A stretch of 64,000 nt of DNA, taken from assembly GCA_964270895.1 (NCBI GenBank), contig OZ185440.1; one strand, written 5' to 3'. Below, one piece after another: positions 51,145 through 62,766 of this stretch. This DNA comes from Podarcis filfolensis (taxonomy: Eukaryota). Below the pieces are notes generated by a model that searched no databases, was not told the DNA's origin, and worked only from the letters and a program-made list of their open reading frames with translations. Position 1 is the first letter of the stretch. Each line of letters begins with the position of its first letter. The position numbers were made by a program, and so were the translations under genes.

Positions 51145-62766
<11,622 letters not shown>

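Follow-up and report, generated by a model that had tools for sequence, protein, structure and literature searches.

Methionine at RPE65 position 450 in a lizard is very probably an inherited squamate state

Results

The RPE65 gene in the window (the whole 64,000-nucleotide stretch of lizard DNA analysed here) has ATG, methionine, at codon 450 (62253-62255, + strand), a position placed both by alignment with the bovine protein and by the sum of the preceding exon lengths. A lizard therefore has, as its natural state, the residue by which the C57BL/6 allele of mouse Rpe65 is defined, as a sequence-only reading of this DNA had claimed. The gene around this codon is an intact and ordinary RPE65, and it is very probable that the methionine was inherited from an early squamate ancestor and is tolerated. 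The further suggestion of that reading, that Met450 is a feature of this possibly basking species, did not survive, as 10 of 12 named squamates and two gecko-like contigs share it. What is a hypomorphic substitution in one inbred strain of mouse would then be the normal state of a clade of more than 10,000 species.

To obtain the gene model, full-length orthologues were aligned to the window by tblastn and the exon borders were then taken from the DNA. The 14 coding exons of RPE65 span 51197-62766 on the + strand, every splice border being an AG acceptor or a GT donor, and they give an unbroken coding sequence of 1602 nt (533 amino acids plus TGA). The coding part of exon 1, 11 nt (ATG TCA ACC CA) at 51197-51207, was placed by a pattern match followed by a GT donor; it is the single candidate found, from one pattern match, and is the least certain exon of the gene. 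Orthologue alignment together with splice borders places exon 2 (83 nt) at 51883-51965, exon 3 (151 nt) at 53098-53248, exon 4 (108 nt, with Cys112) at 53820-53927, exon 5 (142 nt) at 54027-54168, exon 6 (148 nt, with Lys170 and His180) at 57590-57737, exon 7 (82 nt, with His241) at 58242-58323, exon 8 (133 nt) at 59285-59417, exon 9 (140 nt, with Lys297 and His313) at 59538-59677, exon 10 (130 nt) at 60368-60497, exon 11 (115 nt) at 61094-61208, exon 12 (95 nt, ending with codon 446) at 61466-61560 and the coding part of exon 14, up to the TGA and including His527, at 62615-62766. Exon 13 (112 nt, 62244-62355), recognised by its AG and GT borders and by its match to bovine residues 447-484, holds codons 447-483 and the first base of codon 484, a glycine codon split by the intron that follows.

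The per-exon translations have histidine at positions 180, 241, 313 and 527, which we take to be the four iron-binding histidines of RPE65, and cysteine at position 112. Cys112 is described as palmitoylated (PMC9585964). Identity of the exon translations to annotated squamate RPE65 is 93-96% (about 95-96% to Hemicordylus, Varanus and Zootoca), which together with the bovine alignment upholds the earlier identification of the gene; by sequence it is an orthologue of RPE65 rather than of BCO1 or BCO2, within the carotenoid oxygenase family (PF03055). The same distinction is seen in exon 13, which scores 75.7 bits against bovine RPE65 and 34 bits or less against other carotenoid oxygenases. Synteny is also conserved: the gene immediately upstream of RPE65 (37118-47341, likewise on the + strand) is DEPDC1-like, with at least ten exon-sized matches to DEP1A proteins of bird and bat, and DEPDC1 is presumably the neighbour of RPE65 in human. 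In agreement with this adjacency, several public annotations (bat and bird records) have DEP1A and RPE65 fused as one product.

Several other features of the locus were observed. Intron 5 contains a run of 192 Ns (54184-54375) that begins 16 bases past exon 5 and touches no coding sequence, retrotransposon-like open reading frames on both strands (54600-57550), and, near 56800-57000, a tandem array with units of about 30 bases that reads as a repeated 10-residue peptide. About 150 bases upstream of the canonical start, an open reading frame at 50982-51050 (+ strand) opens MLLFPRAQLIGSYVSIKLLLPS and resembles the N-terminus of Hemicordylus RPE65 isoform X1, MLLFPGTKLIGSYAPLKPLLP; the resemblance may reflect an alternative first exon that has been conserved, or a gene-prediction artefact shared by the two. 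Reading through the exon 12 donor (61561-61578, + strand) gives VSIMC and then a stop, while isoform X2 of the gecko Heteronotia ends VSIMH and a gecko-like contig (L002) reads VSIMF and then a stop, and as this read-through is common to all three the start of intron 12 is conserved across squamates. An RPE65 isoform that retains intron 12 is annotated in at least one squamate species.

Residue numbers were assigned from exon lengths and per-exon translations, and exon 13 was also searched alone. The sequence around the exon 13 acceptor (62240-62260) reads ctag followed by CTT TGC AAG ATG AAT ATC. Exons 1-12 total 1338 nt, which makes codon 447 the first of exon 13 and the ATG codon 450; the sequence-only reading had used the same sum, and the exon borders read from the DNA confirm it. 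The 38-residue translation of 62244-62357 aligns over its full length with bovine RPE65 residues 447-484 (3fsn, 4rse; E 3.4e-21), and in this alignment bovine Leu450 sits opposite the methionine of the window, so that Met450 is established at 62253-62255 by both routes.

A single search found 20 sequencing runs that match 61300-63300, and Logan contigs from four of them (X1, X3, X4 and X8), representing four samples and four studies, were compared over this interval. X1 and X3 come from organism A, as separate samples from separate studies, X4 from organism B and X8 from organism C; X1 is perhaps the source of the window itself, and the independent support is that of X3, X4 and X8. A single contig covers all of 61300-63300 in X1, X3 and X8, and in X4 a single contig covers 61509-63300, exon 13 included. 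The contigs show 15 single-base differences and four small indels, with none between 61901 and 62526, and the only one that falls in an exon, C>T at 62739 in exon 14, is synonymous (Thr525). Codon 450 is ATG and the entire exon 13 is identical in all four, this being a comparison of assembled contigs rather than of raw reads, in which a rare allele could hide; at contig level, then, sequencing data from four of four runs bear out the ATG. Within intron 11, about 45 bases (61368-61412) attract matches from many unrelated contigs in each of the four runs, reaching 7 to 28 times the depth of the surroundings, and look like a fragment of a high-copy dispersed repeat.

To place residue 450 among vertebrates, 199 RPE65 sequences of at least 200 amino acids, from lamprey to mammals, were aligned with MAFFT. 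The search of protein representatives with exon 13 gave mostly short open reading frame fragments and did not find the canonical 533-residue tetrapod RPE65; the named set came from a fish sequence recovered in that search (P0013), two word searches and one cluster listing, in which clusters at 90% identity hide most species (15 of 349 and 15 of 169 members listed). Position 450 is leucine in 172 sequences, methionine in 19, isoleucine in one and a gap in seven, and the 19 methionine rows represent 13 species, several of them with more than one isoform. Leucine is found in lamprey, cartilaginous fish, ray-finned fish (Müller-cell paralogues included), coelacanth and lungfish, frogs, crocodilians and birds, and in all the mammals aligned but the mouse reference.

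Met450 is present in 10 of the 12 named squamates, a sample that spans Iguania, Scincoidea, Anguimorpha and Serpentes and has no tuatara, skink, teiid, chameleon or named gecko sequence over exon 13. The ten, which by group are an iguanian, a cordylid, a monitor, a boa, a viper, two elapids and three colubrids, comprise the lizards Phrynosoma platyrhinos, Hemicordylus capensis and Varanus komodoensis and the snakes Candoia aspera, Pantherophis guttatus, Thamnophis elegans, Erythrolamprus reginae, Naja naja, Ophiophagus hannah and Vipera latastei. The remaining two are each one base from ATG: Zootoca vivipara has Ile450, and Thamnophis sirtalis has Leu450 with the genome codon TTG (locus L011, 12992-12994, GCA_001077635.2). 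Set against the methionine of T. elegans, the TTG of T. sirtalis could be either a reversal within the genus or an error in an older assembly. The T. sirtalis protein also has Asn441, where all others have histidine.

Geckos probably also carry Met450, although the evidence is modest. Two Logan contigs (SRR13336341 and SRR13336339) read CTT TGT AAG/AAA ATG AAT, that is Met450, and the exons of both match squamates best; over exons 11-12 one of them is identical to Heteronotia binoei at 70 of 70 residues, against 64-68 of 70 for the other squamates intact there. The Heteronotia isoform X2 itself stops in the retained intron 12 and lacks exon 13. Fragments beginning MWQEPDAY (P0018, P0019 and P0022) were considered as lizard-like and rejected, since their contigs have CTG at the codon and the matches of the peptide are to passerine birds.

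Outside squamates, the only Met450 sequences among the 199 are those of the C57BL/6 reference mouse (Mus musculus) and two turtles, Pelodiscus sinensis (P0300) and Macrochelys suwanniensis (P0303). The two turtles belong to different families, and six other turtles sampled have leucine. A maximum-likelihood tree built from 38 sequences of tetrapods and lobe-finned fish groups the 12 squamates in a single clade (SH-aLRT 99). To account for the states at residue 450 on this tree takes at least six changes, these being one at or near the squamate stem, a change to isoleucine in Zootoca, one to leucine in T. sirtalis, one to methionine in the mouse and one or two in turtles. The turtle methionines have an origin independent of that in squamates. 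Position 450 is one of 18 at which a residue uncommon among other tetrapods is shared by at least 75% of the squamates.

Discussion

Because Met450 is spread over most of the squamates sampled, it appears to be an old squamate state. The most probable course of events is that a conservative change from leucine to methionine was fixed at or near the squamate stem, that methionine was then kept in most lizards and snakes regardless of their activity pattern, and that occasional one-base changes have since produced isoleucine or restored leucine. The long persistence of Met450 in a gene under strong purifying selection implies that it is tolerated in the squamate background, where it would be close to neutral or else compensated by other residues or by the level of expression. 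Neutrality in squamates should not be assumed, however, because mice with this change have less RPE65 protein and slower regeneration. The gains in turtles and the loss in the garter snake fit drift, and selection within particular lineages is also possible.

The state does not track activity pattern, as its carriers are both diurnal and nocturnal: Phrynosoma, Hemicordylus and Varanus are strongly diurnal lizards, Candoia is a nocturnal boa, the sampled colubrids include crepuscular and nocturnal species, and geckos are probably among the carriers too. The idea in the sequence-only reading of a convergent brake on the visual cycle tied to light ecology fails for the same reason, and mapping residue 450 across species indicates, as far as the data reach, that Met450 is ancestral and unrelated to light ecology. 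As most lizards and snakes sampled carry it, nothing about the light ecology of this species can be inferred from it, and a diurnal basking habit for the species is a guess.

A different explanation for the distribution is that Met450 acts as a functional brake throughout the clade, lowering the abundance or turnover of RPE65 in all squamates, having arisen in an ancestor with a cone-dominated, bright-light retina and having been kept as a limiter of the supply of 11-cis-retinal. We consider this unlikely, although the near fixation of methionine over squamates, its appearance on the squamate stem together with other RPE65 changes, and the lower protein level, slower regeneration and light-damage resistance of the M450 mouse would all agree with it. 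The functional part of the argument is an analogy with the mouse. Methionine is moreover kept in lineages that are nocturnal or crepuscular (Candoia, the gecko-like contigs), and the changes to leucine within Thamnophis and to isoleucine in Zootoca suggest a constraint that is relaxed rather than directional. An effect that depends on other residues is what the title of Redmond et al. 2007 indicates. In a related form of the proposal, Met450 would be an attenuator of RPE65 abundance that became fixed in the ancestor of squamates, perhaps alongside neighbouring changes typical of the group, and all lizards and snakes would have a constitutively slower visual cycle in the retinal pigment epithelium; this too is improbable, and were it true, the leucine of T. 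sirtalis, the isoleucine of Zootoca and the independently gained methionine of the two turtles would be natural experiments.

It is very doubtful that this lizard or its genus gained Met450 convergently with the C57BL/6 mouse as an adaptation protecting a basking animal, a view whose sole support is the match to the protective mouse allele, for methionine or a one-step derivative of it occurs in every major squamate lineage sampled and the codon shows no variation among three closely related organism labels. Relatives across Squamata have methionine rather than a Leu450 background, and the residue is therefore not a derived allele of the mouse type. Least probable is an assembly or sequencing error concealing a true CTG or TTG, for which there is no evidence beyond each being one base from ATG: the contigs of four runs, from four samples and studies, show no difference at any of the three bases, so the ATG is not an assembly slip, and orthologues of ten other squamates also have methionine.

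Returning to Met450 as an inherited and tolerated residue, it matters little for this lizard species, and it should not be read as a basking adaptation because it is inherited and common to most of the lizards and snakes sampled. Two other residues are, unlike Met450, lineage-specific differences. Codon 297 (59568-59570) is lysine in the lizard of the window and glycine in the five other squamates checked; elsewhere this position is glycine in most other sauropsids sampled and arginine in the mammals sampled apart from the one primate among them, the only other sequence with Lys297. Codon 334 (60369-60371) is phenylalanine in the lizard and tyrosine in 11 of 12 other squamates. Lys170, the non-mammalian state, occurs in frog, turtle, crocodilian, birds and squamates alike. 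Residues 170 and 297 presumably affect RPE65 activity, and the sequence-only reading had proposed that chicken-like residues might compensate for Met450; that proposal gains nothing from these two positions and is neither supported nor excluded. A literature search for a paper on RPE65 N170K/K297G did not find one.

That reptiles are an exception at position 450 has been known in outline since 2016, when L450 was said to be conserved "except for several reptilian species" (Sukseree et al. 2016, PLoS One 11:e0161640, PMC4990303), the S2 Table note of which gives gecko, green anole and python as Squamata. The observation is the same as ours, made on other squamates. There it is a passing remark, within an argument that leucine is ancestral in the mouse, and the paper does not have wider squamate sampling, the turtle cases or a discussion of function. 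Our literature search found no paper joining RPE65, squamates and the visual cycle.

Among annotated orthologues, those of Hemicordylus capensis (XP_053105067.1), Varanus komodoensis (KAF7254151.1) and Phrynosoma platyrhinos (KAH0618514.1) have Met450 as in the window. The lizard of the window is none of these species, and it differs from most other squamates in having Lys297 and Phe334 in place of Gly297 and Tyr334. A close parallel is the C57BL/6 Rpe65 Leu450Met allele of the mouse, in which the equivalent position of RPE65 is likewise methionine, encoded by ATG and arising from a single (C/A)TG change. The published mouse data agree with what the sequence-only reading had cited, namely less RPE65 protein, slower regeneration and resistance to light damage, and they also include lower activity and slower recovery of 11-cis-retinal; the cause of the low protein level in M450 mice is still debated. 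The mouse allele, however, is a polymorphism of recent origin among strains, set against a background of Leu450, and its drop in protein and regeneration rate has been measured, whereas the methionine of the lizard appears to be an ancient, clade-wide and fixed state on a different sequence background, with R446, I452, R455 and A460 in the flanks where the mouse has K446, V452, K455 and S460. The two may therefore illustrate a residue whose effect depends on its sequence background, which cautions against transferring the effects of mouse or human variants directly to distant orthologues.
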